From Neoechinorhynchus agilis (lineage: Eukaryota; Animalia; Acanthocephala): DNA of 64,000 bases. The position numbers and the translations under genes were made by a program. This document shows, piece by piece, positions 13,457-63,147 of this stretch. A model generated the notes under the pieces. The model made no database searches. It saw nothing but the letters and a program-made list of their open reading frames with translations, and had not been told where the DNA came from. The stretch covers positions 4,496,389-4,560,388 of the forward strand of contig CM121343.1 in NCBI GenBank assembly GCA_051530055.1, read 5' to 3'. Positions within the stretch are counted from its first letter, which is position 1, and each line of letters starts with the position of its first letter.

Positions 13457-16448
<2,992 letters not shown>

Positions 16449-26510: not shown

Positions 26511-28837
26511 ATGGCGCGCAAAGTGATCGTATTGATTATTTGCTTTGTGCTCACTGTTTGTTTATTTGATTGCGATGAACACAATCATCAGGTATGTTTT
26601 TTCATCCATTGGGCCGCGTCGGGTACATTTTTTTGAACGTTTCAGTGATTTTGAACGGAAAACAACTACGAGGAGCGCTTTCTTTCCATTTTCAGTTGCG
26701 CTCTTAATTTAGGACGTTTTGAACTCATTGTGCATTAATTTTACACTTCAAAGAACTTCGCGATTTCCTTTAAGTACTTAATCGCGTAACATAAAAGTAC
26801 TAATTTATCCAGGGCATTTAAGTCACTCTTTTGTGTCATTTTGCCTTTTTAGTATAAAGATGGCGAAGAGATTATTGCCTGGATGAACACAGTGGGCCCT
26901 TATCACAACCGGCAAGAAAATTATCCATATTTTTCGCTTCCGTTTTGCGCCGGAGGACGAAAGGAAATCTCTCACCGTCATGAAACCATAAGTGAACATT
27001 TACTTGGAATGGAACTTGAATATAGTGGCCTTGAAATTAAATTTAAAAGTAAGTTACGACCTGATCGCAATTTTTGCCCAAATCCATCGTTCAAGACGAC
27101 GTAACAAACACGAATTTCTGTTCAATTGCTTCAACTCCCGATCAGTTGCGTCAATTTATTGATGCGATAAATCGTGATTATTGGTATGAGATGCTAATTG
27201 ATGACTTGCCTGCCTATAGTGAAGTCGGTTTCTTGGAGCACGAGAATGGTGTTTATAATCTTTATACCCACAAATTGATTTCTTTGTCGTACAACAATGA
27301 CCGAATAATTGAATTTAATTTAACTGTTGCGAACCCACAACCATTGATCTTTGGATCCGAGATCTGGTTTTCCTATAAAGTAACATGGTCAAAAAGTAAT
27401 TTGAATTATGACCAAAGGTTTAACAAGTATTTGGACACCAAATTCTTTGGACACCAGATTCACTGGTTTTCGATCCTTAATTCATTTATGATGGTCCAGT
27501 TTTTAGTGTGCTTTGTCTTCATGATCCTGTCTAGAACTTTGAGGCATGATTTCGCAAGATATGGATTTGTTAATGACGGTGATGTTAACTCATTGAATAC
27601 TGAACCCAGATCCGATTACGAAAGGAGTATAGTTGAAGAATATGGATGGAAACAAGTTCAAGGCGATGTATTTCGACCACCCCGTAAAGCCATTTTGCTA
27701 GCTTCACTTTTGGGAACCGGACTTCATATAAGCACTTGCCTCCTTCTTCTCATTATTGTGACGATAATCGGCCGGTTATATACCAAACTATCTTCAATGA
27801 TCGGTGCTGGCATATTCCTATATGCGATATTGTCACCAATCAATGGATTTTTCGGTGCCAGCTATTACTCCCAGTGGAATGGCAAAAACTGGATCAAACA
27901 GATGATAACGGGCATTCTTCTATTTCCAATGTTGTTCGCCATTGCTGGTTTCTCCATAAATCTTATTGCCGTTTGTAGTGGAAACACTCGCGCAATTCCA
28001 CTTCTGACAATTCTTAGTCTAATTGCAACTATGTGCCTCATTGTTGCACCACTCAACCTAGTGGGCACATTGTTTGGTCGAGCCACTAGTGGGACTATCG
28101 TTGATACGAGGATCCTAAAGTTTAATGCAATTCCGAGACCAGTTCCAGAGAAACCTTGGTATCTCAGAACTTTTACAATGAACATCCTTGGTGGCATTCT
28201 GCCTTTCGGATCTATTTTTATCGAGATGTACTTTATTTTTTCTTCTTTTTGGGCTTATACGGTAGAGATGCTCATTTAAACCCCGGAATGTGGTACAAAA
28301 ATAAGAAGTAATAGAGATTCTCTTAGTTCAGACATCACTCTATCGTCGAAATCGCGCTACAGTGTGTGTGTGTGCGAGTTTCGATGCAAAAATAATTACT
28401 TGGCAATTTCCCGCCACGAATTATCCCCTTTTCACACAGTGTTAATCTTGTCAACTTCCTTTTATCAAAGCCTTCATGAATATCGCTACCATAGAATCTA
28501 TTACGTCTACGGGTTCATGCTACTCGTGTTTATCATGCTTGTCATTGTAACTTCATGCGTTGCTGTTGTATCGACTTATTTTCTTCTTAATGCAGAGGAC
28601 CATTATTGGCATTGGTCCAGTTTTATGGTTGGAGCATCCGTTTCAATATATGTATACATCTATTCTATTTATTACTTTTATTCTCGGACAAGAATGAGCG
28701 GACTATTCCAAGTTACATTCTACTTCAGCTATATGGCCTTATTTTGCAATATATTGGGAATCATGTGTGGTACGTTCGGATACTTGGGTGCCAATGCCTT
28801 TGTTTATAGAATATATTCAGTTGTAAAAATTGATTAA
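26511..28837 (+). CDS. TM9SF3: Transmembrane 9 superfamily member 3 (nonaspanin), four exons
   Basis: Signal peptide plus DEHNHQ|[71 protein letters not shown] and C-terminal VVKID*. Introns 26592-26852 and 27049-27095 (approximate) are GT-AG; the third junction is anomalous (see findings). Confidence 0.96.
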
Positions 28838-30609
28838 AATAAATGAACATACTAGTTTTGTTTTTATGCTCCAAATGGGGACCACCGGATTATGCTATGT
28901 AACCAGATCCTTCCCAAGTACATTGTCTCTCGGGGTAGAACTTTTCGTCCTAGCGGCGGATCAGGTTGAAGAGGATCTTTTTTGGACTTACCGGCTAACC
29001 ATTTCGACTGCGACTTGCTCCTGGTAAGCAGACGCAATAAAGCGGAAATAGATTATGGAAATCCGCTGCGACCAGTTTTTAACAAATCCAAGCGCTCTGT
29101 CCTTCTGTGGGCTTCGTTGCTGGCCAAGCGTGGCAGTCGCACAATTGTGAATACCTTAAATAAACTAATTAGCGAATGGCTTTCGTTCATCATCCTCTAT
29201 GCAGGGGGAACGACACCAATTCTCCGATACGAGCTGCTGCCGACGAATCTTTTTAATTTATATTACGCATATTAATGTAGGCGAGCGACATTCGTAGTGT
29301 ACTCTTATTGCTAACAAACTCAACCTTAAAAACAAAATTGATTACGCCAAACATTTAATAGTATCAAAAAAACATATTCTACATGTCGATTGAGCAGTGA
29401 AAAACATTTAATTAAACTATAGCAGCCTTAATCAACAATGGATTATAAATTCGCACGTCCTGCAGTTCAAACAGAAGAAATTTTGTCGAAAGCAATTAAG
29501 TTGAAAATTTAGCTTTCTAATGAACATTATATGAATCGCACTTCCTTCTAAAGTCGAGAATGGTTTTATTTCAGACAGTATTTTACGATCGAGAACACAT
29601 TCATCCAAAGATAAATCCTTAATCCACGTGGATGTCGATGAGAAACATTTGGATGCTGCTTACTAACGTAAATGACAAAACTAAATTTTCCTATAATTTT
29701 TCTGGGTTTGCTGCACCTTTAATCACTGATATCAAATCAAGCAAAAAGCCAATATTCAAATCAATTCATTTAGCTCCGATGAAATTTTGCAGCACTCAGG
29801 ATTACCCCGATTTTTAACTGTGTTGCGGCGGTTCAGTTCGATAAAAATGCAATCTGAATAATTGAATCTTAATGCTGCAAAGAACAATTTTTGGACAGAG
29901 TCAGAGCGTATCAATAATTAATGTAGCCCGGCAATCTAAACTACTTTTGCTTTTACTGCTAAATTTCGTAGAGGATACTCATAGAAAGGAAAAATCGTCA
30001 CGAAATAAAAAGTGAGGCGCGAGCACTAGTAGAGACTAAAATTCAAACAAAATGCACTCGGTTTGTTAAGCTTAAGATTTGTTAAATTCTCACAAAAACA
30101 ACCATTTTCATAAGAAGCATTCAGTGCCTCAAACATAAAAAGGTAAAATTAAAGTCAGCTTATAAAAAAGCGCAATATTTCGACCCTGCGATTCAACCTA
30201 GAATATAACGCAGAACTACACTAATGATTCCAAGAATGTTTCTTGATTGCGCCGTTATTTAGAACTTAATCGAAAGGTTTAAAGTGAATTTCGAATTTTT
30301 GAAACATAAAGGCCATATTAGTGTCACATTTTAAAATAGCGCAAAATTTTGAATTTACGACTAAATAATGAAAAACAATACCGCAATGCACCATGAATTC
30401 TACTTCGCTTTTTAAACTCAAAAGCTTCTGGAAAACAAATGAAGGTCTTATGCTGTTTAATTATTTCGCTTTCTCCTTAAAACGAAGCTCAGAATACTGA
30501 AAACTGACAAGATCCAAGTGACAAACGGCTTAATAATGAAAAAGACAATAGCAGTGCACCAATCATCATGAAATGCCATTTTATAACGGTTTGGATACAA
30601 AATTTCAAA

Positions 30610-30791
30610 GTAAGTTTCCTCTTCCCTTCATCGAGGTATTTCGTCCCCTTTGGTTGTGTGCGTCATCAGCAGTAACGGATTCGAACCCTTCAGATCCCAG
30701 TTAAGGGTCACCGGGTTCGAATCCGTTACTGCTGATGACGCACACAACCAAAGGGAACGAAATACCTCGATGAAGGGAAGAGGAAACTCAC
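30610..30791. repeat. Near-perfect inverted repeat: 79-bp arms, 24-nt structured loop
   Basis: Arms 30610-30688 and 30713-30791 with 2 mismatches. Each arm carries GGTTCGAATCC. Confidence 0.97.
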
Positions 30792-32000
30792 TGTTGAGTC
30801 CCGCCTCCCCGGGAGGTATCTGAGAATCCGGAGGGATGCACAAACTTATAACCGTCTACGGTCTTGGGGCATTGAGCGCAGACCAGCGCTTCCCAGACCG
30901 AAATCGGTAGGCTACGGGTGTCCATTCGGCCGTGTATGGAAAAAATATCAATCAAAATTTCAAATCTTTTTTGTATGCATTTGGCAATTTTACCGTGACT
31001 TAAAAATTCTCTTTAGAAGAAGCTTTGAGCGATTGTAGGAGGAAAACTATACATTACAAAAGATCATAAAATCGGCGCAACATGTCGATCTTAAGGCCAG
31101 TAATTAAAAAGGACATAAAATGCACCAATCAAGTCCAAGTATCTTTTATATAGGCTATTATTAATAAATAATTAAAAGTTGTTGACAAATAAAGTTTAAA
31201 ATATACCGCCGTGGATTTGTTTGTATGTACCAATTGACGACATAAATGTCTGAACTAAAGATGAAAAAGTTTTTGTTAAGATGTTGTCTGTGAGTGCAAC
31301 TCAATGCTAGGGATCATTTTTCGAAATTAAACGCTATAGAAATTTAGGTTATGATATTGAACAATGGAAATATGATATCTTGTTATTTTAAGGTCACCGG
31401 ATCAATTTGAGGTCTGATAAAGTTATGAACGAAAACCATTGGTTAATTTCACACTTGATCATGTGATCAGGGGTGAAAAAACTATTCATCGTTCAATGTT
31501 GTCTCACATAGACGCTAGCACGGAATGAATACACAGAATCTTAACTCTTGTCGCTTTCTTTATGTTGTTGGATTGGTAGTGACATTGCGAAAATCGAACT
31601 AACAAACCACGAAGGAGTTGGAATTCGGTAAGAAGATGTGATCTCCGTGGCAAACGACGGTTTAAACCTTCGTCCATAGACCTTAGAATTAAAGTCTAGA
31701 CAATGCCCAAAGTAATTCGTTGCCGATGACTATCCCCAGTACTCGTATCACAGTACGATCGATGTAGTAATAGGGAGAATCGGCGTTTGTCCTAGTGCTT
31801 TGGGAGAATAGCACGCCACTTGAGAGAAGCCTGTAGAGATTGCGAGAAGACCGTTGTAACACGCATTATTCGCAGCGTCGCTTGGATCACGACTAAGACA
31901 AAAATAGGAATCTTGGATGATTCAAAAGTCTAAAATTCTAGTTTCATTTTTTGGCTTTCATGCATGTAATAAACACCCAAATCCGTCCTTAGATTTGTAG

Positions 32001-35153: not shown

Positions 35154-38100
35154 ATGTCTCATCAAGCACAAACGGATCTCCTACTCGATTATGCATGGAT
35201 GATTGGAAAACGCAAATTGGACAACAAAGTGGCTGATCTAGTAAATAAATGCCCTACTCCGTCTGAAATTGTTGAAGGAAAATCTTCATTTACAATTCAA
35301 AAAAGACAAAGACTCCACATTTTGGCAGTTTGCCAGTGTGCTCTAGTGGCAGATAGAGCATGCCATGTTCAATTGACATGCGCTACGTTCATAAGTAGGC
35401 TAATTGGACAACTATATAAAGCCAACTTTCAAAACAAGATAATAAACGAGCAAACCGATAATCTGGTTTCCGCGACAAGTTCCATTCTAGACACTGATAC
35501 ATTCATACTGTGCCTCGTTCGAACCGCATGCGAACTTATTGATATATTAGAGCGTTTTTCAAACGAAAAAAAAGTTTATGTGGTACTAACTGAGGTAAAT
35601 GTTTGCATACAAATCCAAATGTCTGAGGGTAATCTAATTTTAGCTTAAAAAGTCCAAAATAGGACTGCTGATAGGCTTATTGAAACAATTACATTCGGAT
35701 GTTAAATCAACCTCGTGGATTACCGAAAGGTTGATGGTTATTATAAGCGCCACAAGAGCTTCGCGAAGGTTTGGTTTCTTTTACTACCATTTCGACTAAT
35801 TTGCTAAAGGATCCAAGAAACCGGATCTCTTGTACTTCATCTATTGTGTTGTGGCTCCAACAATAGGCGTTCGATTAGATTTCAGCAATGTGAATATTGC
35901 CAATTACTTGGAACTCAAAAGAGCGACATTGAAGATGCGTTAATGTGTTCATTATTTAATCGTTCCAATAGATCGACATTGCACATTCCTTCTATAGAAC
36001 TGCTGCTAAAAGAGTGTAAGAAACTCATGAGTCCCGATTTTTTCCAAAGGTTGTACAATCGATATGCAAGTCACATTCCAGGGCTATGTCTAACTCTTGA
36101 ATGCTACGAAATGCTCCGTGAGTTTCATCTACCTGAAATTCTAGGCGATGTGGCTGTAAACAAAGAGCTGAAGAAACTTTTAAAGTTGATTCTGAACAAC
36201 ATTCGAAGTACACGTTGCTTCTTATTTACAACTCGGGATCGAATCTTTTTTAGTCATGTGTACCACAACTATGAAGATGTCCTTTCTCAATTTCTAAACA
36301 TACAATCCCGGGTTGATTCCGCGATACTAGAGCTGGAATTCTTGCTGGCTGTTGATTTTCCGAATCGACGGATATCGTAGGCTTCGTGTTTTCAATGCCT
36401 GGCTTACAAGAAGCAAGAGCGAGATATTTGACGCTTTCAACTTTAAAAGTTTGTTTAAAGCACCGATAGAGCATCCCAAATATTTTTTATTAAAGCCAGC
36501 GATTTATTCTTTATGATTATTCAAATGCAATTTCCTTAATCTGTACTTTTAGGTCCATAAATAACGTTAGTCGTTCGTATGCAAAAATGATTAATTTTTT
36601 CCTTGAACATGTAATCATAGCTGATGTCCTTGATTGCACTATGATTCGCAAAAACGTTATTTGTATGCACTAAAAAGCCCTAATTGATAATTTGTTAGAC
36701 ATTACATTTTTAAACAATCGTATTATTACTCAAAATTTGCATGTATAAATTGAAATGATTTTTCTGGATGCAGTTTTCTTGGAGAATCCTGTACTTTTGA
36801 AGCTATCGATAATGCAATTTTTAATGTATCTCAACGTTTTAGCTGTAAACTCTCCATTTATCAAGATATAGAAATCTAATTAACTTTTTTAAACGAGCTG
36901 GTATTACATTTCTTAAATTTCTTTTCCACATCGAGATTCGTTGATTTGGTGGACACGGTTCTTCGTACAGTGGTCAAACAATTTAACCCACCAATAATGT
37001 TGGGTTCAACAGAATGGTGCGAAATGAACGATGGAACTCTTCCTTGCTTCATGTGTATATTCGGACTTGATAGCAATCATCTTTCTTCAATACATCATTG
37101 CACTTGTGATCCAAAATCACCGAACTATGAGCAGAATGTCATATCCAATCAGGATGTTTTTATCCGCAGCAGACTTAGGTTCATTAAAACATTGAACGGG
37201 ATTTTAATTGAAATATGCAAGAAGCAGCGTTCTCTACAGCCCGTTGTCGTTCGATTTATATTTTACTCCATCACCGAATCCAATGGATTGTTATCAGCAC
37301 TCCAGAATACCAATAAAACTAGCAATGTTGTCTCCAGTGACTTAAGGAGAATGGTTATACATACGCTTGTTTCCAATCTTTGTCAATGCTCAAAATTAAA
37401 TGATTCGGAGATCGTATCAAATACGTGGTCAATTGAGGGAGTCTTGTCTACAACCTTAGAGCCTCAACATCCCTTAGAAACTACTGATTCAACACATTCC
37501 ACTAACCATTTAGTGGCAAGCTTACTTTCTCTACATTTGCTGGATCCTACAATTACGGATAATTTTATCCAAAACCTATTTACTGTATGCGAAGAAAACG
37601 CATTCGAAACGACTGTATTTAATTTTATGTGCCAAGTAGTTTCTGGAATGCTAGGAAGGACAAAAAAACTCGCAGTTAAATCCTACGATGAACATAATCC
37701 TATCGGCCCTAATACTATTCTGCATGTGGTCTTCCTTGATGTTGTTGGAAGATTGTACCATGAAAGCTATGCCTTGCGGGATTATCGTCAATCGAGCTTT
37801 TATATTCGGATTCTGGGAAGTTTGTCGAATTCGATCAGAGATGGCACATTGAATAGTCAGCATTTATTACAGCGGTTGCTCTTTGTGCTTTTGGAATTGT
37901 TCGTTAGCACAGCACGGGAGCGCACAAGTCTATCTCAAATAGGAGCAATCATCAATCTACTGAATTCGATTAATAAAATTATCGGTGATATATCAGCAAA
38001 GATAGACAAGCAATTTAACAATACTAAACTCTTAACACGAAGAAAACTATTTAGAGATGTTTGGATGTACAATACGCTCTTTTTTAGTTGTCCTTTAGCC

Positions 38101-41100
38101 AATGATTTTGACAAGCGTGAAACCTATAAAACAAATCATTTCGGGCCTCTTTCAAGTATATCTCCTGCGATCGTCGTCGGTGATCATCTTCGCGAGTTGC
38201 TCTTCTATTCCGACTTGAAGGTTGCCGGCACAAATGGAGGGCGGGGATTGAGAATAAAGGAAATCGCGTTTGGGTTTGCCACTTCAGACGACGAAAAGGC
38301 GGTTCTTGGCAGACTTTCTCCAAGTGGACTTCTTTATCTTCTGGCGGTGAAAACACTTGAAAGTTGTAGGTTTGTGTGGTTTCATTAATTAAGCATTCTA
38401 CAACCATAGGTCATTTAGAGTCACCTACAAGCTTCGTCGTGATGATCCGACTAAAACTGAGAATCCATTCGAGAAAATGTTCGAATATTTGGAAGACCCT
38501 TACATACAAAGCGACAAATCAAATATCTGGATCTGCATCAAGAAAATAGCTGAGCTGTGCTTTAACTCTTATGTAACAAGCATGAAAATGGTACAACTGG
38601 ATGCTGATTGTGAGATTCGCATTCTACAATTGTCATATATATTGCTCCATAGAACGTGTCATTTTTATTTTGAACTATCTAAACTTTCCGTTCAATTACT
38701 CAATGCACTGTTAAATAAAACAAATTTTCCAATTATTATTTGGAATTACAAATTCCTTGAAGGATTTATGGACTATTTTCAGCTATCTTCATTGTCTGCG
38801 CCGCTGAACACGATTAATGACAAGAACGTTAAATTGTTTCAAGATCGAGTGCTTTCAAACTTTGTCTCAATAGTTGCACAACCGTCCGAGAAGCACAGAA
38901 GCTTACTAAATGCGGTTGTCACAATGGCAATGGATCATCCAAGTGAGCGAGCTATACAATTAAAAGAACTGAGTAATCTATGGGATCGTATAATATCTGA
39001 AGCTACCTCCTATGCTCCGCTGATGACTAAATCACACATACAGAACTATTTGTTTCGGACTTCAAGCGTAAAAAATAGAATCGGTGATGTGGAGCAATTT
39101 CATTCTCATCCGGCTTTAATGATCGCAGTAAATATAATAAGTGGAGGTAATAAAAACAATATGCTGGAAGCACCAATCACTGAAGGCCATTCTCATCACC
39201 TGAGGACTACGGGATCACTTGTTCACAATGAGTTTTTTCCAGTTCTACTCTCAAAATCCTACAGCATCGGATATATCCATGGAATGGATTTCGTTCCGGT
39301 GAATGACCTTCTAAACGAATTGGAAAATCAGATTCGTTTCCATATGAGCGGCGTTAATGAAATCATACAAAGTTTCACTTCACCAACAGCGAACGTAATT
39401 GTGGATTGTATACAAACGACCTCGATTACTATGAAAACAAACAACAAAGAATCCAATGGAGAACCTTTCCCAGCCAGCATAAACACCATTCTTTTCAGAA
39501 TTAGTGCTTTGCTCGTATACCACAAAGGTCAGCAAAGTGTAAATCCCCGTTTTTTTTATAAAAATGAGATACTGGTGATTATTTAGGTGTTCGATCAGAT
39601 GCTGTTTGTGAGAAAAGGCTGCTAAATATGATTGCTTGGATTCCAGGTCTTATTCTCACAAAAGAAGCAGTATTAGCTGCGGTTGAGTGTTGGACGTGGC
39701 TCTTGTCCGCTCGTCCGGATTTATCGCTATCATTATTAGAAAAAATCAACGACTCTTGGAAAAATACTGTGCAGACTCAGAGAGGCATTTTCTCACATGA
39801 AGTCTTGGCGGAAAATCAAGCTTCGTTTGATGGTCCACTTTGTTCTGGCCCACCTAAATTGGACAATCGATCGAATCAGGAAAAGAATGGGCTTTCATCC
39901 TGCACGTTCACCGACTTGGTAATGCCACATTTGATTTGGCTTACTTTTATTGACGAGCAAGTTAAACTGTCACTGCTCGGAAATCCACAAACCTTTCATA
40001 TGTTTGTGGATATGTTGCATCACTCATTGGGGATTCATCACACCGGCGAAAGGAGAGCATACTCTACCGATAGTACCGCTTTAAGTTTTAAAAGTGATTC
40101 AGTGCCCACGATTTCCACCAACATTGCGGCTGTTGGACCCTTGTTTAAACTCCTTTTGATTGTGATGCGCTGTGTTCAACATGGAGTAAATGAGAGCAAT
40201 AGAAGCAATCAACTAAGTGCTCTTAAAGAGCGGGTAATTGCAACAATAACAAGATACTTTTCTGGACCACCTCAATTTCCAATGAAAGACATGATAAGCA
40301 TGCTAGATGATATCGAAACCTTGTCAGCTCTTTTCAGCTTCTTAAAATCAGAACAGCCCGTCGAAGAATTTTCAACCGATTCGGAAGCACCGAACAGGAT
40401 GGTTAGTATGATAGGCGAGTACCATGGCGGACCAATCATTTCTAATATTGCATTCCGATCATTTACCGATATTTTCTACGAAACCTACATGGATAATTTT
40501 GGTTACGTCAAGTATTTGGTTAGGTTCGTGATGTCCAATAAAGAGGGAGAGTGCACATTGTCGCCAAAAAAGGATCATATGATTGATATGGATGTCGATT
40601 TAATTCGGTGACTCTTAATCTTATGTTCCATTTGGATTAAGAGACGCCGCTTTAGGAAGTTTTAAGAATATATTGAATCGAAATAGCAGATTAGATGATC
40701 GATCATTGCAAAGGATATCGAAAAGGCCTTCAAAAAGTCTTCGATGCAGCTCACAAAGAAGCTTCGTAATTTCTGCGCAGCCACTAGCACTTACCAAGGC
40801 GTCTTCAGATATGCATTTAAACGAAAAACACGTTACCAAACCAGGGTCCTATCGATATTTCAAAAATGCAGCGAGCAGATTCAAAGTAGCGATCAGCCAT
40901 AAGCTACTAGACGATCCTGGCAATCACAACTCTGCAATAAAGCAGAAAATGCAAAGCCGGAGCACCTCCTATGAGCAAAGAGCTACGTTTTTCCGTTCTC
41001 TTAATGGTAAGAAAACCAATCTTAGTTTTTATATATCAAGTGTCTATTAGAAGGACGTCCTAAGCAAAGAATTTTATCGATAAAATTAAGTCAACGGCAT

Positions 41101-43490
41101 GACTTTATCCTTTCACTATTGGTAATGTTTTTATCTTTGATATGCAGCGTAACCCACAGCACCATTTTACTAGGCATTAGAAATAAAAAGATTTAAAAAT
41201 TGTCTCAATCCATTCATGAAAGCCGAAATAATTTCTCTCTATTCCAAATACGTTGAAAATGTGGACACTTGGACGTCTAGAAATGAACCACGTGGATCAG
41301 ACGTTGCTAATGAAAACAATTTGTTTGATCCAGCAAACGATACTAATGAAGTTTCGATCTTTAATGACACGATTATTAAATGGGTCAGAATGATCGAGCA
41401 ATTATGGGATGTGAACCCGTTGGTATGTACATGGACATATTCCAGGGTATCTTCAGAGAGAATATGGCTTACCCTTGCGCGTTTAATGCAATCGGAACCT
41501 TCGGTTTTTTTATTAGATTGTTCATATTCATTTCAGTTTGCCATTGGAACACTTGATTCGGTCCGAAGTAAACTCAACAGTGCCGATTCCCATGTCGATG
41601 GCGCGCCGGATTTTACGACAGCCGTAAAATGGTCTGGTCTCAAAAGGAATTGTCCTTATTGCGCAGGAGTTTCAAATTATAAACAACGCCTATATCCACT
41701 GATCCTTATATGGTGTTCAATAAATCCAATCGATGCATTATCGTTTCTCTTTCAATCGGGTGGATGTACAGCCGTTAACAATAAAAGTGCTTCAACATTA
41801 CGTCCTAAGGACCGTTCAAGTAAATCACCTTTATCTTCTTCTATTCAACAATCGTTAGTTACTACTTCGTATGCTCTCCATTTCACTGCTTATCATAATT
41901 CGCCTCCTGTTGCCGATGAGCATTATTTATCCAAATTATCAGAATCAAGCTACCCGTTATTAAATCCAATACTCACGCAGTACGCTTGCCGATGTCTGAT
42001 GAGATATAATGCTGACATCCTAATAACATATATTCCTCAATTCATTCAAGCTTCCCGTTACGATATGCTGGGTATTGTGGAAATGCTCATTTGCCATTTA
42101 GCTGCCAAATCGAATCTGTTGGCCCATCAGCTTCTTTGGGATATGAAAACTAACTGTTTTCTAAATGAAGAAACCCCAGACGGGCTAATGCAACCTATAA
42201 TGGAACGATTGATTGGTAGAATCACTGATAGATTCGGCATACGGGAAAACACTTTTTATAGGCGCGAAGTCACTTTTACCGATGCACTTGTTTCGGTCTC
42301 AAAAGTCTTAAAAGGCTACCGGAAAGGCGCGGATCGACAGAAAGCATGCTTCGAGAACATTAAGACAGTTGTTGTTCCTAGCGATGGATGTTGTTACCTA
42401 CCTAGTAACCCAAGTTCGATTGTCCAATCGGTCATTTATGCTTCAGCTAGCTCAATTGTTCTTTATTCGCTATCGGAGTGACTTTTAATAAAGAATCGAT
42501 GGGCATAAACCCATGCATAGCGCTGCCAAAGCACCGTTTCGATGTACTTTTATTGTTCACGATGTTCAAAAACTAGAAGTGATGGAAAAACATTGCCTTG
42601 ATTACGAAGAGTACAGGTCATTTGCTAATTTGCATTTACAAGATTCACTTGTCCGTAATAGAAGACGTGATTCAAAACAGTCCAAACCTGATCAATCATT
42701 TTACTTAAGAAAGCAAATGGTGATTTTAAAAGTCGGTGATGATGTTAGACAGGACATGTTAACTTTACAGCTTATTCGAATGTTCAAAAATATTTATGAC
42801 TCAATCGGACTTGACCTTTATTTGTATCCATACAATGTCGTATCGACTGGTCCTGGCAAAGGCGTGATTGAATGTGTTCCGGATTCACAATCAAGAGATG
42901 AAATTGGACGAAGGGTTGATGGCGACATGTTCCAGTATTTCTTAAGGAAATTTGGACCTATCAATTCTGAAGCATACCAAATTGCAAGGTCGAACTTTAT
43001 ACGCTCTATGGCCGCTTATAGTGTAGTAGTGTTTATTCTTCAAATCAAAGATCGTCATAATGGCAATATTCTAATCAATGAAACGGGTCATGTAATCCAC
43101 ATCGATTTCGGTTTCATTCTTGAAATATCACCTGGGGGGAATATAGGAATTGAGCCAGACATAAAGTTAACGAATGAAATGATGCTTATAATGGGAGGCA
43201 GTGAAGATTCCCATGCTTTTGAACAATTTAAAAAATATTCGGTGGAAGCATATCTTGCACTCAGACCCTTCAGACGCCAGATATGCAATATCGTCGCGAT
43301 GATGCTCGACACAAAATTACCCTGCTTCCTTGGTAGAGCCGTTCAACTGCTTGATTCCAGATTTCAACCAGAACTAGACGATACCAAAGCAGCAGAATAC
43401 ATGCAGAACATTATCTATAATTGTACACGGGCGTTGCGATCACAACTCTATGACTTATTTCAATATTATCAAAATCAGATTCAAATGTAA
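35154..43490 (+). CDS. PI4KA: Phosphatidylinositol 4-kinase type III alpha (STT4), about 12 exons
   Basis: YIPQFIQASRYD, LLAHQLLWDMKTN, YLPSNP, MHSAAKAPF, KVGDDVRQDMLTLQ, QIKDRHNGNIL, HIDFGFILEISPGGN and LYDLFQYYQNQI*. Most introns are 41-58 nt GT-AG; two junctions appear to need GG donors and one region has a frame break. Confidence 0.96.
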
Positions 43491-43759: not shown

Positions 43760-45290
43760 GACTCTATCAATCAGAACCTCTGCCCTGACTCAAATTACAG
43801 CCATTGTCTCATAAACTATCGGTTCCACATACGAAACTTTTGTCAACTCGCCGATACTCCCCTTAGTTTCGTCATACGAAGTACTACAGCATCTCAATAA
43901 AATACCTCGAAATTCGTCTTCTTAATCCGAAAACCCCAACCGGGCTCTTCGCTGCATCATCCCGAACTTATAGATTCTCTTACTGTCATCATAAATCACA
44001 GCTTTTAATATGGCATCTACCCCTCATGCCTGGAAACTGCTAAAGTTATCCTCCTTCCAAAAAATGGCCATCCGATTTCCACCGAATCATCCGTATAATA
44101 TCCATTTTACCCGTTCTTTCAAAAATCATCGGAAAATGTTTTAAATCTCGCCTTCTTTCACTTCTCCACGAAAAGTTATCGCCCCTACAATTTGGCTTCC
44201 TACCCAGATTTTCTGCAACCGATGCCCTACTTTGAATTTATGACACGCTGCTACGCAACCTCGACAATAATCCCTCCCACGTCACCCGTCTCATTCAACT
44301 TAATTTATATAAAGCTTTCGACTCAGTGGACCATTCACTCCTTCTCTGGGCCTGCTCCCATTTTAGTCTCAACTTGTGGCAGATCCGCTGGCTCGAATTT
44401 TATCTTCACAATCGCAAACAATACATTCACTGCCGTTCTACCCCTTCCATGGGCCTATCCCTCACCAAAGGCGTACCTCAAGGTGTCGTACTGTCACCAC
44501 TTCTCTTTAATATTTTCCTAAACGACCTCAAACCTCTCCTATCACTCTAAACTTTTCTTATACGCCAACGATATCACCCTCATCACTCAATAACCAGCCC
44601 AACTCTCCCTCTTCTGAACCTCTAAAGAAATCACACACATAAAAGATTTCTGCACCAATCACAAACTCTGCCGCAACCCCACATTCTCCCCCGAACTTCT
44701 AAATGACATCCTACGAGTAACCTAGCTAAGAATTATTGGTATCCAATTTCAATCAAATTTGAAATGGGACTCGCACATCACTTTCTCGCTCAAACACAAC
44801 ACTTAAAATTTATGTCCTCAAACGCCTCCAGCATTTAGGAATCCCTTCCTCCGATCTCTACAAATTTTACTTCTGCTTTATCTTACCTTTCCTCACCTAC
44901 GGTTACGCCGTATGTTGCAACCCTTCCAAATCTCAATTCCGTCATCTTGAAATGTTTCACGGAGAAGAGCCTCTGAAATTTGCATAGTTGATTTTCCCCG
45001 CTCACCAAATGCCTTTATAAAATTTACAACAAATATTCAAAACGCCTATTAAACCTATCTCAACAACACTCTTAATCCTAATTCGTTTCATCCTCCCTCT
45101 ACCTCTGCTTCTTTTTCCATGCTGCCCAATCTCCTCGGATATCATTGCTCAAAATGAATCCGAAGAACGACCAACCTAGCAAAATCCGTCACCCGCTCCA
45201 AAATAAACAACCCCATTCATTGAACCTATCCTATTGATCGAGTGTTCACGACGACCGAGAGATACATGGTTTCTCTACTTTGAATAAAAA
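43760..45290 (+). mobile_element. Degenerate 3' half of a CR1/L2-type LINE (reverse transcriptase), ending in an A-rich tail
   Basis: TAKVILLPK, ISILPVLSKII, QFGF, KAFDSVDHSLL, GVPQGVVLSPLLFNIFLNDL and LYAND (YADD-derived). Frameshifts throughout; AATAAAAAA at ~45283. Confidence 0.9.
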
Positions 45291-50216: not shown

Positions 50217-53200
50217 TTATACAAGGTTGTTCCACAAAAAATAGCAAGCTGAGTTGACAAATGCATTCACACAGGCAACCGCCATTTCAGTCGGAACATT
50301 TTTAGACCTTCGAACCACGTCAATTAACTTAAATTACAAAAATGATACGAAACACAATATTAACCGATATACTTACCATAATTGCGTGGCCATTGAACGT
50401 ACCAGTTGATATATTGCTAGGTATACTCCCACTATGGCGGCTGAGTCGATCTATTGATGGATTGTCGGGTGTGACTTCATCCATATTTAAACCGCCAATA
50501 CTTAAACCACCGATTGAAAACGCTGATTGGTTTACTTTAATCAGAATAAAAGCCTCTGTTATTTCGAATTCACCATATACTGATAACTGTGAAGTTCCGG
50601 ATTTTCCAGTAAATACAAAGCTTCGTCCGGGTTTTATATCGCCTGCAGCATGCACTCCAGAAAACAGACAAATGTATGTTGTACCAGATTCATGGAATGA
50701 ACTCGCTGAAGTTTTCGGCGATGTAATGTATTCAAGAAATCGACTTGCCAAATCCCCTTGTAGATTGACTAACGATTCTAACCTCGAATCCAGTTCGGTT
50801 AAGCTATTTGAAACAGTATGGCATAACAAATCCTCAAATTCATTAAACGAGAGAGGAGGCCCTCGCCCTGTAACATTGTTTCCTTGATTTTGCGAGTTGC
50901 AATTCCATTGGACAAGCCGTGTCCAAAGTCGGTCGCGGAGAAAAGATTTCGAAGCATCGGACACTATGTTTTGGAAAAATGCCCTTGTGGATATTGAAAA
51001 AGCGTTGATTTTGTGTTCAATATCCGCAACGACTGTTTCATCACGTTTAGTGACTAGGAAAGTCGAATGAACGGGTAAGATACTTCCGATCGCGTTTAGT
51101 TTTATTATATCATCAGATGCTTCCCATGCTGGAGAACTTGATGTGCTGGATGGTGATGAAGTCTTAGTATTCCTTTTCAAAGAATTTTCAGCTGTATTGA
51201 CAAAGTTGGAGGACTTGACACTGACTTTATGTGCTTCATTAGCTAACGGAAGTAAATCACTTTTATGCATCATTATTGTAAACGCAGTGATTTTGACAGA
51301 GTTGACAGAATATCGATTTGTAACTTGAGGTTTACTTGGCTGGAAAGCAGATAAAATCGACTCATCGTTAATTTCACTTAAAGTACAAGTCGAGCCTGTT
51401 TGTGGAGACGGAAAATATGCTAGACGGCATACATTGAAATGTGGATCGCTTTGGCTCGAGTGAAGAATAAAGCTTGGACTCTAAATTACAATATGAAATG
51501 CATAAAAATAAAACATTTAAAGCGTTTTTCCAAGATTAACTATAAGCAGATTCCCAAAAATTCTTGATTTGAGTCTTAAATTGAAATGATGGACTCAATT
51601 ACCTCATATCGCATGTTCATTTTTCTGACATCAATACCATATTCCTCAACATGGACGATAATATATTCAAAGACGTCAGCTGGCATAGCTTGGATATCGA
51701 TATACCAATCCTCTGATTCACACGTAAAAATAAAAATCAAATTAGGAAATACGTACCCTGCCAAGCGATATTTCTGGCATATATTGGTCGATCAGCATAA
51801 TAGGTAAGAAAGTCATGAAGAAAGACGATGACAGGGAAATTCTCCGTTAGAGTCTTTGATTGGTTAACGAGGTACTGGTAAAGTAATCTCAAGTGAAAAT
51901 CATACGTAAAAGAGTTAAAGTGAGTTATATCGCGTATCCGATCACCGGCGTCTTCCAAACTGGGTGTGGATAGTAGAATGTCGCTGGCATTCGGTTCATG
52001 TTCGTAGAAATATACTTTCACAACAAAAAAGTGACCAAGTTCCTCCGAACTCCTCACCATTTCGATCAAGACAATCCCGACGCCTCGAATAGTTTTTTGG
52101 ATTACAAGAGGAGACGTTCCTTCAGTAATGACAACTGGAGAGAATCCCGCAGTGCTCAAATAGTTTTGATATTGTTGAAAGAAAAGATTGGCCATGTCTT
52201 GTCGCCATAGTGGATCATCCCCTTCGTCATATTCTTCATCCATCCGCATATCGTCTCCGGTCAATATCTGACAGTCGTGATCATCCTCTGCAATAGTTTC
52301 ATTACTGTCTCTACAGCCTCCTTTAACAATCGCTGAGAAGCTTCTTAGCCCGTACGACCCAGTGACGGATCGATTGACTTGATTCCGATGTTCGTTAAAG
52401 CTTGGCAACTTTCGTTGTCTTGTATCTTGTAATTCTGAACTAAACTTGGATTTAGCTGTCGGCGGAGAATTTGAATTGCATTGAATAGGCATTGCGGATG
52501 AGTCTAAAGTAAGACTTAACTGTGATTTAATGCATTCACGGACGTTGTTATAGAAAAGTAGAGGAGTAGCGACCGAATGTAAGCACCGACTGTTTTGTTT
52601 GAGGATATTAAGAGTGTTCACCGTAATCGGTGCTTTTTGACGTACAAGCCAACTTTCATAAAGAGTTCTCAATTTGTCCTCGCAATAATAATTTTCGTGA
52701 TAAATCGATTTTAATTCCAATGCCCACTTTCCAAATAGGCTAACCGGATCAGGCTGTTGATCGCATGCCACAACTGGTGCAACAATGTCGATCGGAAGTG
52801 CCCTTTTTATCATTAAATAATCATCGAAGCTACTGCACTTGTATGGATCAGAATATCCGATCTTTCGATTTTCGAACTGCACCGAAGGCGTTGCACGGTG
52901 GAGTATTGTTAGAGCGTTTCCGGCATTCTTTTTAACGTCGGAGCTTGTGCATTGGTCAGTCGTTCCTACCAAGACAGAAGACATATCATGTGAGTCGGCT
53001 GGAGAATTGATTGAAAAGATGTTCAGATTAAAGAAGTTAAGCTGTTGAAGTAGAATTGAAGTTAATAGAGTTCCACGTCTCGCGTGCAATCGACAAATCT
53101 TGTTCATTTGTGAGCATACAGCATCGGATAGAGATGATGACCAGTTATAACAATAAAGGGTAATTGTATCGTTTAGAACGTGAAGTATAACAAAAGATTG

Positions 53201-56200: not shown

Positions 56201-59200
56201 CATTTTCTTGTTCACCCAAAGGCATATAGACTCAACAGCTCCAAGCAATTTATTAAACACCAGATTAGCTTCCTCGGCAAGTGAACCACCAACATCTGCG
56301 TCACGTATCTGCAAAAGGATATCAGCAAAATGTGTTGGAGCATCTTTTGCTTCAGCTCGGGATGGTAGCGATCTAAATTTGATTAATAACCAAAATCCAG
56401 GTAGGATTTTAGGGCTCATCCATGTATCCACATCTTGAAACATTGTCTCCTCGTCAACAGAGCATGAAGATCGAGTAAATAGTCGGTCGTTGAGAACTCT
56501 TTCAGGATCAGAACGAAATCTTTTGCGATCACGAAACTCACCCACGACATGCTCATACCTGCACCACGAGTGTCGACGCTTGCATGGCTCGTATTCGTCC
56601 GTATCCTCTTGGCTCACCAAAGCAACCACGTATAAATGAGACGTAACCTGGAGCAATTTGTGGCACCTCCCCATTTTGTTATCTGTATCAGTTTGTATGG
56701 TCAACAATTGCAGTTCCTGTAAGAAAGCTTCAAACGACGGTTGAACACCCATTATGAACTTCAATGGGTGCGAAGCTCGACGGCAATTTCGTGTAATATT
56801 TCGCTTCCCAATTGTATCAATCTTTAGGATGTGATCAGCGACATGATTGATTTGATCGAGAGATATCGTAAAAGACAGCATCGATGCGATAAATTCATCA
56901 TCGAGAACCCAGTTCAATTCCCTCATACACCTCGCCATCACAGATCGTTTCTTTTTTAGTCTACTAGGTACATAAGTACCATGAGGCGGTGATATATTAG
57001 ATACATTAAAGGACCCACACGGTGAATTTACGCTATAATGTGGATGCTGATGAAGATACTGTAGACGTTGGGAAGGATGAAACAAGTGGACGTATGGTGG
57101 AATTTGCGGGTGAACAATGTAGTTTAAGCAACTTCGCACATTTCGAGAACTCTCAGCATTGCAAGAAGCGGGTCCTCCGATACATATTGAATCAGACTGA
57201 GTGCGTTCGCTATCAATATCATCATCAAACTGTTCAGTCGATATTTCTTTATTGATTTGAGATAGTTTCGCCTCTTCGAAGCTGTTTAACGGAACCATCG
57301 AGACGACGTCCAACATAACGGCAACTTCCGACATGGGTGCGGACGGAATCATACAATCCATTTCATGTAAGAGAAATGTTATGCATAATGGAAATTGCAG
57401 ATTTGGATCAAATGGAATAATTTTGTCACAAGATCGACAGATGAATCGCAAGGAGAATGATACGAAGAAAGGAACATTTTGGTGTTGCGAGCTTTCCATC
57501 CCCATCGATATATCAGCCTGACTATGTTTTGAACTAGGCTGGAAGATAAACGATTCAGGAATATATGACACGCTATGTATTTCTACTCACCAGATCGTAT
57601 GAATAATAGAAGATGTCACTACAGTTATTGACTGGTTGAAAGTATTGATTGATTACTTTTAAAAGTCGTTGACGAAATACAATCGGATCTCGGTTTAGCG
57701 GTTTACAGGGTTGTATCGAAGCATGCAATGCAGGAGAAGACCTAAAATTAAAAGTATTCAATATTAGCTATATATTTTTTTCTACACGTTTTCAATTGAA
57801 ACATTGGATTTTTTAGTAACGAATTGTACCCGTGCATGTAAGGCCGATAAATAAGATTTACAAAAAATATAAATTGACAAAGCCGCTCTATACAAATTCT
57901 ACTAATATTGAATAACTTCGAAATTTAAATGGAAGGATGAGATATTAACAGAAGATGCATTAATGGATTATCCACTACTTACAATTCCGGAAAATTCATC
58001 ATGTGGGTGCAATATAACCGGATCATATCCGTTAGGATAAGTTCGTTGCTTGTCTCCTGGCAGATCGATAGAGCAAACTCTAGATCACTTCTCTCTATAG
58101 TCATGTCTCGGCGACAACATTCGAATATTCCTAAAATATACAATTTTTCCGTGTGTAATCAAAGGTAAAAAGTGCAACATATACCACTTATGAGGATATT
58201 ATCAAAATTTTCCCGAAGTTCATTGCAATGCTTGTACAAAACGTCAAGTGCTTCTTCTTCTGCCAAAGATTGAGCTGTACTGGAGCGACTTCTATTTCGT
58301 TTTCTCTGATGTAAAGCTTTATAGCCGACGGTTGCGTGTGAAATAATCGGAGATGATGTAGCTATGTTCAAGCCATGACTGATAGCGGCATTACATTGAG
58401 CAGATATTGAAACTTGCTGGCATTCATCACCAGATCGGGTGTAATCGAAAACGATTGTATCCGATCTTAAAGAATTCACCAAAGATGAGAATGATCCAGA
58501 TACGTGTAGTATGGAGTTTGATGAATTTTGTCCACGAGATGAGGAATTCGAGACGTTTGACCATAAACGGCTCGATAATGCGGATTTAGAGATGTAGTAC
58601 ATAAAGACTGGCAAATATTTATGGGGTCCTGGAACCAGTCGCTCGCGGCACAACGCATCGCATTGTAAGTGTTCATTCCAGCAATCAAGAACGTCAAGTG
58701 TTGGAGCAATTATTACTAGGCAGGCAGACGCAAGCGGCTTTAGAAAGCATTTCCACCCAACATCATTTGGCTTAAGATTTTGAAGGAATGCATTAAGTTT
58801 TAAAGACAACTTCGCTGCAGATTCAACTCGTTTGAGAGAACGACTAATCCATTGCACAGCATTTTGGTGTTCTTTAAATATATCGTATTCGTGATTGCAA
58901 CAAGCTGTCCGGCTTAACAGTGAGTATAATTTTGTTAGAAGAACCGAGTTGGCATTCGCGGTCGCAAAACTGGTTAGGACTGCTAATGCTTGACAGCTTT
59001 GATCCAACAGTGACAATGGGTCGAAAATGAATGGTAAGTTATGGATGTGATCAGTTATTGCTGAACAAGCTACACAACCATCGTGAGCATCTATGTTCTC
59101 ACGCAATGTAGGTTCAATCCAATTCTTTAGCTCGCTATGTGTTTTTCCTGACACAGTATCATTCCATTGCACGTAAATTTCATGGATAGTTTCAAGATCG

Positions 59201-62200
59201 GCTACTCGACATGGTAAGAGGTATTCCAAGGACATAAATAGTTTAAATATTTCGTCATCTTCATATTTAATCTGGTCAGCGATGCTATCGAATGTGTTAA
59301 GACCGGTGGAATTATCTCCATTCTGAGGCTCCAACCAACATTCCGAAATAAAATAGATTTCTTTGTCCGCTTTCAAAGGTCGATTTTCAAGAAGCCTATT
59401 CAATCATTTTTAGGAAGACTTAATAGTTCAATACAAACTAAACTGACCTTGAAAAGAAGAATGGCTCGCTGCATTGAATGGGAAATACAACATACTGAGC
59501 GAAGCATGAAACTACTTCACAAGATCGCTAAGTTAAAATCGTGTTACTGAGAGTTTATTCTTTATGACTTAGAGTCTGGTACAATTGCAAATATTAATTA
59601 GTTTTACGTTATAATTATTTTTAGGGCGATATACATAAGAGATTTTCATGACGGTCCGCCATATAAAAACATGAACAATTCAACTAATTTTCTGGAAAAG
59701 TATTTGCATAAGGCGCGATGATCGCAGTCCGCGTGGTTTACCAACACATCTCTTAAATACCACAAGTTTTTCCGTCTCCAAGAATATTAAATTAACGTTA
59801 TTTGTACTTTCGTCAATTACATGCTGTGATTTCTGTTTATGAAAATCGAGCGAAATTTTTGCCTCAGTTTATAGATAAATCACAAAGATCTTTAGAACGT
59901 AGAAATTTTGAAGCATTGTTTGAATTTTACAAATTCAATCGCGTAAATTAAGTAATTTAAGTATAACAGTACTTTTATCCCACTATGCGGCCGTAAAACA
60001 TTTATTTCTCTGGTTTATCAAGCAGTAAAATGTTTGCGTAAAATGCAACCTCTTTATTCTAAAAGGTCACTTTCTTAGTTAACGAATTAAAAAAACGTCG
60101 CGCCATTAAGTGCACAAACGTCCTAGAAACTTCCTTGATGCAGAATTAAAATACAGTGACTGCATCAATATTTCGAAAGCAAATAAAAAGTTAGAAACGA
60201 GATCGTATAAAAAATCGCCCCGTTCAACTAACCATTAGAGCAAACTCGTTGAACAATACGTGAACGCCTTGATTGTTTGATTGCGCGAAATGAAATCCTT
60301 TTGAAAGTCGTTGCCTCCAATGATCGTTATAAGAGGGCTAAAATATAAAAAATACTTACCCAATAATTGTACTAATGATTGCTTCGACACACTCGACATT
60401 TATGGGATTATTCTCAAAATCAGCAAACGTTCTAATCCAAACTTTTCGATGAAAAAAGCGGGAGAGAGCGTTTCTTTGAATTGTGGACGGATCATTATCT
60501 AGTACTTCTTGGTAATTTTCTGACCAGTTTTTTCCCATTGGTTGATTGTGAATATGATCGTAACTAAACATCCATTCACAATTGATTAAGCTACTTTAAA
60601 TGTATTCTTACTTAATCAGTAACTCATGAATTAATGGTCTAGGTAGGCGATAAAATGGTACGGGTAATGGCGACACCGGTGGATTCTCCCACCGGACCGT
60701 ATGACGCTCGATTACCGGGCACCTTTTAGTTTTCTTTGATAGCGGAGAAGCACTGAATTGATTTACGATAGTAAGATTACTTAGGCTTGCAAGCGTATTA
60801 GCGGAAGCGGATCGGCATCGCAACACTGGGATATTCCGGGAGACGTCGTGCAGAACCTTTTTTGGAGAGTGCCGGACAAGCAATTGAAGAACCTTGAACT
60901 CACGCCTGCGCACATTTCCTGGCTGGCAGCATAACTGAAGTAAAAGCGAAGGATGATGAAGAATGGACTAGATGGGGATTCATATGAATGTAAAAGGCAG
61001 AATCTAATAGGTAGACTTGAATTTCCTGCTGAATCGCTTAAAGATAAAGCAACTTTAACGATTATCAAATAGACTAGAAGAACATACCTATCGAAAAATT
61101 TGAGAAACATTTGATTTTCCAGTAAGGTTATTGGAAAGTATTCTTGTAAATAAACATTTAAATCTTGCCTCGCTTTTCTACACCTTACAAACGAAAATCC
61201 ATTGGCATCATTTGATATCGCGAAGCTGGGCAACGGTATGTCATGTTCAAGCAGTAGCGTTATTTTAAAATCCCGGAGATACCAGCACCAATAGGATGGA
61301 TGGACAGATATCAGTGGTTTCCATATCATACAAAACTTGGTAGTTGAGTGGTCTCTATAAAGTTTGCTAAATAGTTTAGAGGTGATTTGTACAAATTCAA
61401 ACGATTTACCTCCGAAGTTGTTTTGCGAGTTCCAGCTTCCCCGTAGAAATTTGTATAAAGACGGGAACGGTACTTTTAAACGTTTCACAGGTACATTCAG
61501 TTATGGAATACATGAACGAGACCATAATGCGATCTATTTGTATCGTCCTATATTGGCGGCAAATGATTTTGAAACAAAAAAAAGAAATATACCTGGAGAC
61601 TGTTCCATCTACAAGTTGCTTCGTTTTAGCCCCGACGCATTTCTTGTGTGCTGGAATGCACCTTTGATCACTTTCGCTATATATCGTAACAACACTTTGG
61701 ACATCCCCACTTCCAGACGAAGGATGAGGTCCAAAAGCTATACACGTGGAACCAACAATTTTGTAGCACAATCTGTAAGGACCGATACAACTCCTTACAA
61801 GTCTCACTACAAGGTCTCCATTGTCAAGCATTTGTATACCGGGTTCCTCATTGGCAAACGATCTTATGGCATAACCATGGCCAGCGATTTTAAGGCATAC
61901 CAACTCCGGAACACTAAATGGCATCTTTAGCTCAGCGTAATGTTTAACGACATGTCTTGATTTATCCGGTCCAACTGGTTCATGCGAAAAGAAACTACAC
62001 AGTAATATCCTATGTAACGGATATTTAAGTAACTCGAAATTTTTATCATGCACGCGTGGAACGACCAAGCTTCCAAGGCTTTCCATTGACGATGAAACCA
62101 TCGCAAAAAGAGTAGCCGATTTGAAATTGGAGGAAATGCAAGCCCTTCCGTACGAGAGATGGGATGTTGGCTCTAATGTCGTGGATTGATTCTCTGGTGG

Positions 62201-63147
62201 TTCAGCGACAACAACACAGAGACCAATGTGTCTCTGAAGTAATGATTTGCGATAGGATTCAAGCAGTCCAGGATTGCTTATGCTCATAAGCCCGTCTGTT
62301 ATCAAAATAATCAATCTTCGATCAGTTCTACCGAACATGTCGGCTCCACATTGACACTCAGAATCGGGCATCATGTTCAATAACATTATTCCAGAATTTA
62401 GCACATTGCATAACTCGTTGCTCAAATCACTCAATAGTTTACACTCTTCACCACTTTTTAGATCCAAATTTCCGATCATTTTATTAGATTTGTATTTCAC
62501 CCGCCATATTTCATAAACTAATGTTTTCAAACGAGCATTTACAATCTCCATTATTTCGTCCAAACGTGTATTATTGTCCAAAACGAGACAATTAACAATA
62601 ACTTGTTGAGAGGAGTTCCCAAGATTTATTGGAAAGTGAGCCATTATTGATATGTAAATCTCTGGCTTAAAAAGAGTCGATCCATCCGAAGCATATACGG
62701 GCTCACAGAGTTGCTGAAGAAGAGATTGTAACTGCACCGCAATCAGTTCCGCATTTATGAGTTTATAACGATAGTGTACAAAACTAGATGATTCGCTCAC
62801 TTCAAAGGTGTTCAAAGGAAATAGCGTACATTGAGCACCTTTGATCATAGGTCCATTAGAATCGCAAGTTTGTAGGAATGTGAGAAAATATAAGGTCGAC
62901 TGTCGGTGTCAATGTATACTGCATCTGCGTGGTAATTGTTTGGCGTTAGAAATGTTTCGGATTTACCATTTGTCCTTAGTCTTGCAGCGATTACATTGAA
63001 CCTTTTGTCTTCTGATGAAGGCCCAACAACAATCGAGCGCTTTTCTATTAAGGTATCCATATACCATCTAATCATTTCTCCCTTCGTAATTATGTCTTTT
63101 TTGGACGTGGGCAATATATATACTTGGTCTGCGATTTGAGGTATCAT
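50217..63147 (-). CDS. SZT2: SZT2 (KICSTOR subunit), more than 20 exons
   Basis: ADQVYILP, FKPEIYISI, WKPLISVHPSYW..LLLEHDIPLP, RLSKGFHF, AQYVVFP, FISECWLEPQNG, PGQFACD, NRRNMFVY, RLDAETL, THFNSFTYDFHLR and a C-terminal CYFLWNNLV* all match the SZT2 layout as I recall it. Exons between ~53600 and 54220 are not fully resolved. Confidence 0.93.

Follow-up and report, generated by a model that had tools for sequence, protein, structure and literature searches.

Introns that depart from the GT-AG rule are known from a few animals. In the copepod Eurytemora affinis and in Oikopleura dioica, GG or GA donors account for about 10-12% of the introns and need an exon end AG together with an A at position +3 (AG|GAA, AG|GGA). 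In Fritillaria borealis 95% of the introns are non-GT/AG, with AG/AC and AG/AT borders, and a divergent U2AF as well as modification of small nuclear RNAs (snRNAs) have been implicated. No report on non-canonical splicing in Acanthocephala, rotifers or Syndermata was found in the literature. Here, we analyze a 64,000-nucleotide stretch of the acanthocephalan Neoechinorhynchus agilis (CM121343.1, assembly GCA_051530055.1; called the window below, with all positions counted within it), in which an earlier note had proposed GG-AG and GA-AG introns at four junctions of the genes TM9SF3 (junction #1), PI4KA (#2 and #3) and SZT2 (#4). The paper describing the N. agilis assembly does not mention introns or non-canonical splicing. 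Our tentative reading is that at least two of these introns, those at junctions #1 and #3, and probably also that at junction #2, are spliced one nucleotide (nt) off the GT...AG register, with the offset on the 5' side.

As in Eurytemora and Oikopleura, the introns in question would be short U2-type animal introns that do not have the T of GT at position +2, gene finders restricted to canonical borders truncate or split the affected genes, and the frequency could be similar (two to four of roughly 35 introns in N. agilis). They differ in that C (or T) is the last exon base and T occupies position +3, so that a GT lies one base inside the intron; furthermore, GA is more frequent than GG in those genomes, whereas three GG stand against at most one GA in N. 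agilis, where moreover the offset may lie at the 3' end. With respect to sequence context, the likeness to the Eurytemora donors that the earlier note had drawn is not borne out, as the exon end AG and the A at +3 are both missing at all four sites. In the human FGFR GA donor and the "parasitic" model (Burset et al.) the odd cut also adjoins a canonical GT (or AG) able to recruit the machinery, but it lies 6 nt from the GT instead of 1 nt and is used alternatively, whereas its use in N. agilis would be constitutive and in essential genes. Non-AG acceptors, such as that of the GT-GG intron of vertebrate BANP and human TG 3' sites (PMC2374985), likewise combine a canonical GT donor with a non-AG terminal dinucleotide; these are isolated cases, whereas N. 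agilis has two or three in 64 kb, with an AG immediately upstream of the cut. Fritillaria borealis shares with N. agilis an animal spliceosome that accepts other borders, but there the border types are different and occur genome-wide, while N. agilis introns are mostly plain GT-AG.

Results

The four sites and the intron lengths of 234, 49, 64 and 47 nt given in the earlier note were found as described (Table 1). Its claim that GT-AG borders break the frame at all four held for junctions #1 and #3 and did not hold for #2 and #4, for which canonical in-frame solutions exist. In TM9SF3, the exon upstream of junction #1 runs TTT TGG GCT TAT ACG GTA GAG, and the 3' side reads CGCTACCATAG A ATC TAT TAC GTC TAC GGG. 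Excision of the canonical 233 nt leads to FWAYTNLLRL, out of frame; excision of 234 nt leads to FWAYT|IYYVYGFM, which aligns without any gap to 10 orthologues ranging from bdelloid rotifers to coral. The motif SFWAY-K-IYYVYGF is invariant in 10 of these 10 orthologues, and the sole departure is the Thr that N. agilis has in place of the invariant Lys, encoded by the split codon 28259-28261 of the NCG/NCA type. In an exhaustive scan, none of the 389 in-frame border pairs keeping SSFW...YVYGF was GT-AG, and all GC-AG pairs added at least three residues inside the invariant motif.

At junction #3 of PI4KA the 5' side is ATT GTC CAA TCG GTC ATT and the 3' side is TTTTAATAAAG A ATC GAT GGG CAT AAA CCC ATG CAT AGC GCT GCC AAA GCA CCG. 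The canonical 63-nt intron is out of frame and leads to a stop codon. With 64 nt removed, the product is LPSNPSSIVQS|IDGHKPMHSAAKAP, i.e. YLPSNPSSIVQS-IDGHKPMHSAAKAPF, and its phmmer alignment to human PI4KA spans the junction with high posterior support. Because of this alignment and of a motif ending [ML]Q-SAAKAP that 9 distinct metagenomic homologues carry, the join IVxx|ID is taken as exact. The split codon (42428-42430) is again of the NCG/NCA type and turns a near-invariant Asp (IVxD-ID) into Ser. An exhaustive scan of 610 in-frame border pairs contained no GT-AG pair, and in the scans of both junctions the GC-AG options led to insertions or to the loss of conserved residues. The canonical pair 42478..42520 (43 nt) was rejected, since it would remove ID...PMHS, and with it the M-x-S in the N-lobe of the kinase, and introduce 16 unrelated residues. 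No PI4KA locus with an intron at the place of junction #3 came up in metagenome scans, all 80 homologues being intron-less. For the sequence as assembled it is thus proven that neither junction #1 nor junction #3 has a frame-keeping GT-AG solution, their exon ends being fixed by residue-level homology.

Junction #2 lies in a poorly conserved linker of PI4KA in which there is no alignment to the human protein. An off-register intron is not proven here: the site is not forced off GT-AG, as two canonical in-frame options exist. The unusual reading is nevertheless favoured because the donor TCG|GTGACT shares the CG|GT context of junctions #1 and #3 and because the acceptor would be TTTAG, which serves in 8 of the 11 short canonical introns, none of the canonical introns seen being shorter than 43 nt. 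Junction #2 is therefore probably the third off-register case. At all three junctions the GT-AG intron that looks best (G|GT, ending in TAG or AAG, of typical length) would leave the exon sequence exactly one base too long, and a shift by 1 nt restores the frame.

In SZT2, the frame upstream of junction #4 ends with ATG GAC CTA TGA. The GA-AG model yields YKLAILMDL-LSESSSFVHY, which in phmmer reached 13.7 bits (E=0.3) against human SZT2, with FSHSYKLAILMDL aligned to LAWQYRFVIELDL. The 101-nt canonical model yields AVYIDTDM-SESSS and 13.1 bits, with IDTDMSESSS aligned gap-free to IELDLSPSTG, and the 62-nt canonical model gave no score against the human protein. An exhaustive HMMER search with exon 2 of SZT2 found no orthologue, the sole match being the fragmentary N. 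agilis model P0235. We lean slightly towards the GA-AG model because its similarity reaches further upstream (SRPYIF to TRVTFL); the junction may also be spliced as a plain GT-AG intron. Towards the 3' end of the candidate intron (62800-62830, minus strand), TTTCCTTTGAAC lies at a distance of 12-13 nt from the acceptor and loosely resembles a U12 branch site; the 5' end of the intron, GATCAAAG, is unlike a U12 donor. Elsewhere on the minus strand of SZT2, a good G|GT donor is combined with a good acceptor off by one at 58185 (aagt|GGTATAT..57768) and at 51757 (gcag|GGTACGT..51481), and canonical alternatives exist for both. Overall, the observation is partly confirmed: it is real for junctions #1 and #3, plausible for #2 and open for #4.

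As a background, about 15 canonical introns were re-derived from TM9SF3, a DDX3-like gene, PI4KA, SZT2 (several of 43-55 nt) and one unnamed gene, out of about 30 canonical junctions reported before. Beyond the GT, their donors are loosely conserved, with G at -1 in about two thirds, mostly A at -2 and G at +5 in 9 of 12. The donors of junctions #1, #2 and #3 (ACG|GT, TCG|GT and TCG|GT) all have C at -2 of the GT, and all lack G at +5. Among the canonical donors, C at -2 occurs only in a candidate intron of MTCH2 (23426-23473, plus strand, ACG|GTAATT...TTTCAG, 48 nt), which resembles the anomalous donors in its CG|GT context and which, being in frame and stop-free, may be no intron at all, so that its use in the earlier note as an example of canonical splicing is not supported. 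When read in the GG (or GA) register, the exons end in AC, TC, TC and AT at junctions #1 to #4, followed by T at +3 in all four. The exons flanking the anomalous junctions are 1-2 kb long and intact, so that sequence errors would need to be confined to the junctions. The four donors (GGTAGAGA, GGTGACTC, GGTCATTT and GATCAAAG) do not match the U12-type 5' sequence RTATCCTT, and only junction #4 has a loose counterpart, TTCCTTTGAAC, of the U12 branch site TCCTTRAY expected 10-15 nt from the 3' end. An Rfam search of the window found no snRNA genes.

Three further lines were rejected. The break in the annotation of PI4KA at 36380/36997 was dismissed as a fifth case, since a canonical GTAGGC...CGAG solution of 559 nt exists. 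Scans for additional off-by-one donors based on open reading frames (ORFs) alone were uninformative, because trimming of ORFs nearly always gives some canonical pair. Border shifts of -1 or -2 would give Arg at junction #1, but a stop or inconsistent borders at junction #3.

Which side carries the offset was addressed by comparison with rotifers. Both Adineta steineri and Rotaria have a canonical phase-0 intron in TM9SF3 at the same codon boundary (FWAY-x / IYYVYGF), namely GCA TAT AAG|GTAAAC...TTTAG|ATT TAT TAT and GCT TAT AAA|GTAAAA...TTTAG|ATT TAT TAT, respectively. This K|I intron is not present in the fetched Aplysia and Porites loci. In N. agilis, phase 0 results only from the GT-GA reading of junction #1, the GG-AG reading being phase 2. 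Because the bdelloid intron is in phase 0, the GT at 28262 would be located at the ancestral donor (ACG|GT), and the surplus base would be the A that follows the AG (CCATAG-A-ATC). Judged by this sequence comparison, an offset at the 3' end is favoured, or else an insertion of the A that was offset by a slip at the 5' end, i.e. a one-base intron slide. In the bdelloids, YFIFTSFWAYK of TM9SF3 is encoded by an 11-codon mini-exon between two short introns (Adineta steineri locus 3299-3446, Rotaria locus 3560-3660), of which N. agilis keeps the downstream one only.

The GG-AG and the GT-AGA readings give the same protein at junction #1 (ACA versus ACG, Thr) and at junction #3 (TCA versus TCG, Ser), and at junction #2 GG-AG and GT-AGG give even the same messenger RNA (mRNA). 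For this reason the label "GG donor" is not established; it follows automatically from a consensus G at -1 plus one surplus exon base. From the GG-AG and GA-AG donor system of the earlier note, the impossibility of canonical splicing at two introns therefore remains, whereas the GG label is not supported as it was stated; the bdelloid phase puts the extra base on the acceptor side. Register-shifted introns with a one-base offset are a better description than an established GG/GA donor system.

For the N. agilis genome, MaSuRCA was used to combine Illumina, Oxford Nanopore (ONT) R9.4 and a small amount of HiFi reads from a pool of 50 worms and from single females into a hybrid assembly, which was annotated by BRAKER with RNA-seq data (PRJNA1223661). 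BUSCO completeness of N. agilis has been given as 47% for the genome versus 55% for the transcriptome. When searched with sequence from the window, TM9SF3 matched N. agilis ACOME3_009555 (P0001) with 100% identity and everything else with at most 54%, and PI4KA matched the N. agilis fragment ACOME3_009558 (P0121). The genomic locus of P0121 is identical to positions 26997-50611, so that the window begins at 4,496,389 of CM121343.1. In the public models PI4KA is split into four genes (35154-43490), TM9SF3 is truncated and lacks exon 1 and the 261-nt canonical intron, and SZT2 (60784-63147) is in at least two pieces (P0235 with 515 amino acids and a model of 2478 amino acids) with about 200 initial residues unannotated. 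The breaks coincide with junctions #1, #2 and #3: P0001 runs through junction #1 and terminates within the intron, and P0121 runs through junction #2 to DVDLIR and a stop. Off-register splicing probably helps to explain these broken gene models.

Table 1. Features of the window with their positions, and mRNA sequences predicted for the alternative readings (^, exon join)
Feature	Position	Strand	Length (nt)	Borders and remarks	Predicted mRNA
TM9SF3 exon 1	26511..26591	+		signal peptide; fits DEHDH-K|Y start in orthologues; absent from public BRAKER model	
TM9SF3 intron, canonical	26592..26852	+	261	CAG|GTATGT...TTTTTAG|TAT, phase 0; position and phase as in Adineta	
TM9SF3 intron, canonical	27049..27095	+	47	AAAA|GTAAGT...TTCAAG|A, phase 1; position and phase as in Adineta	
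TM9SF3 junction #1, GG-AG	28261..28494	+	234	C|GGTAGAG...CCATAG|A, phase 2	GCTTATAC^AATCTATTAC
TM9SF3 junction #1, GT-GA	28262..28495	+	234	CG|GTAGAG...CATAGA|ATC, phase 0	GCTTATACG^ATCTATTAC
TM9SF3 junction #1, canonical	28262..28494	+	233	GT-AG, out of frame	TATACG^AATCTATT; also as GCTTATACG^AATCTATTAC
TM9SF3 last exon	28495..28837	+		IYYVYGFM...VVKID, then stop; not in public model P0001	
PI4KA control intron, canonical	38370..38418	+	49	GTTTGT...TTTAG	
PI4KA control intron, canonical	about 39528..39586	+	59	GTCAGC...TTTAG	
PI4KA junction #2, off-register	40607..40655 (GG-AG) = 40608..40656 (GT-GG)	+	49	consensus TTTAG acceptor; identical mRNA	TTAATTCGAAGTTTTAAG
PI4KA junction #2, canonical	40608..40659	+	52	GGAAG acceptor, in frame, DLIR|FKNIL	TTAATTCGTTTTAAGAAT
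PI4KA junction #2, canonical	40608..40641	+	34	in frame, DLIR|DAALGSFKNIL	TTAATTCGAGACGCCGCT
PI4KA intron, canonical	41007..41180	+	174		
PI4KA junction #3, GG-AG	42430..42493	+	64	C|GGTCATT...ATAAAG|A	TCCAATC^AATCGATG; k-mer form TGTCCAATC^AATCGATGGG
PI4KA junction #3, GT-GA	42431..42494	+	64	CG|GTCATT...TAAAGA|ATC	TCCAATCG^ATCGATG; k-mer form TGTCCAATCG^ATCGATGGG
PI4KA junction #3, canonical	42431..42493	+	63	GT-AG, out of frame	TGTCCAATCG^AATCGATGGG
SZT2 junction #4, GA-AG	62846..62800	-	47	T|GATCAAAGG...TTTGAAG|T	GGACCTAT^TGAGCGAATC
SZT2 junction #4, canonical	62900..62800	-	101	GT-AG	CACCGACA^TGAGCGAATC
SZT2 junction #4, canonical	62900..62839	-	62		CACCGACA^GTGCTCAATG
DDX3-like control intron, canonical	14403..14457	-	55	TAG|GTTGGT...CATTTAG|A; DEAD-box spacing restored	

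Two other features of the window were observed. A tandem satellite with a unit of 73 bp fills positions 2349-4969 with about 36 copies, which are 97-99% identical; one of its frames is accidentally open, giving rise to many spurious ORFs. Just 3' of the PI4KA stop codon, at 44099-44984 on the plus strand, there are decayed reverse-transcriptase fragments (PF00078, E=7e-12) in three frames, the remains of a dead retroelement of the type lacking long terminal repeats (non-LTR).

Discussion

To restore the frame at these junctions, the splicing machinery would have to place its cut one base before the GU or, alternatively, one base past the AG. In the former case U1 would dock at the GU and the first-step cut would be made after the conserved C (C|GGU), giving an intron that begins with GG and ends with AG as well as the junction codons ACA (Thr) and UCA (Ser). 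From the genomic sequence we infer both the reality of the surplus base and the side of the offset. The 5' placement appears somewhat more likely than the 3' placement because C at -2 is common to all three donors, which also agree in lacking G at +5. The replacements of Lys by Thr and of Asp by Ser also speak for the 5' side, as though C, or NC(G/A), were required, and GG/GA donors have a precedent in animals, while none was found for frequent AGR| acceptors. Several points weigh against an offset on the 5' side, or against register-shifted splicing in general. Sites in the GG register would pair very poorly with U1, and their context is unlike the AG|GRA of Eurytemora. The conserved intron phase in Adineta and Rotaria opposes a 5' placement. 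The proven sites are two only, and a chimeric query made of the four junction peptides retrieved no database protein from N. agilis or a close relative that spans any of the junctions. Finally, the breaks in the public models lend weak support, since BRAKER also missed canonical introns in this region (TM9SF3 intron 1 and a GTGAGT intron at about 60903..60857).

It is also possible, though less likely in our view, that the offset lies on the 3' side, with the GU donor used where it was ancestrally and the exons joined one base past the AG, which would result in GT-GA introns at junctions #1 and #3 and a GT-GG intron at junction #2. The phase-0 bdelloid intron (AAG|GT or AAA|GT...TTTAG|ATT) argues for this, as does the agreement of N. 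agilis with Adineta in the position and phase of the other two TM9SF3 introns. The donors would be normal-looking in the GT register (G at -1, GT), junctions #1 and #3 have the 3' junction AG-A-ATC in common, 3' sites are in general more variable than 5' sites, and the BANP GT-GG intron is kept across vertebrates. However, a 3' offset leaves the C at -2 shared by three donors unexplained, would involve mixed terminal dinucleotides (GA, GG, GA), and would be a case for which no animal with frequent AGR| acceptors was found reported. In addition, a G at +1 paired with a terminal A is, to our knowledge, not a known second-step pairing.

An error of the MaSuRCA assembly, with one extra base per junction (G doubled to GG, or A to AA) in introns that are truly GT-AG, is improbable. 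Nanopore R9.4 reads, the pool of 50 worms and gap closing by long reads could have given rise to it, every surplus base sits in a run of two, and with one base deleted all three introns would be canonical, that at junction #1 also being in the rotifer phase. Yet Illumina data exceeding 17 Gbp underlie the consensus, no frameshift occurs across about 25 kb of long exons in the window, and two or three random indels would all lie within 1 nt of a splice junction with a probability of about 1e-6; a biological cause is also suggested by the unusual CG|GT sequence common to the donors and by the exchanges to Thr and Ser. The argument of the earlier note that extra bases at donors would be a strongly non-random error is thereby upheld. 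Least credible is canonical splicing with the product rescued or lost by other means. Ribosomal +1 frameshifting would find the mRNA context NCG A AUC at both junctions #1 and #3, but the 0 frame has no slow or stop codon as at known +1 sites. A micro-exon would add residues within gap-free invariant motifs, and the 64-nt intron is too short to hold one; decay to pseudogenes is opposed by single-copy genes with long intact exons, conserved domains and catalytic motifs.

One may speculate that these introns form a distinct register-shifted class CG|GU...AG|R, restricted to N. agilis or found in acanthocephalans at large, which shows a 1-nt uncoupling between recognition and cutting, is constitutive in essential genes and comprises several percent of the introns, although we regard this generalization as doubtful. 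Such a class would make a third independent case of an animal lineage whose splice borders are relaxed, with a new rule. If confirmed by RNA, the introns would extend the few genomes that routinely break the GT-AG rule by another animal lineage and by a sequence context of a new kind. They would provide a natural system to study how the position of the cut is set relative to recognition by U1, U6 or U2AF. The comparison also bears on one-base intron sliding, for which the TM9SF3 intron, canonical and in phase 0 in bdelloid rotifers, would be a live example. Moreover, splicing of this kind would systematically truncate gene models and inflate estimates of gene loss in Acanthocephala. Claims of massive gene loss in this group (PMC12256650) as well as drug-target screens that use these models should be re-checked against non-canonical junctions.

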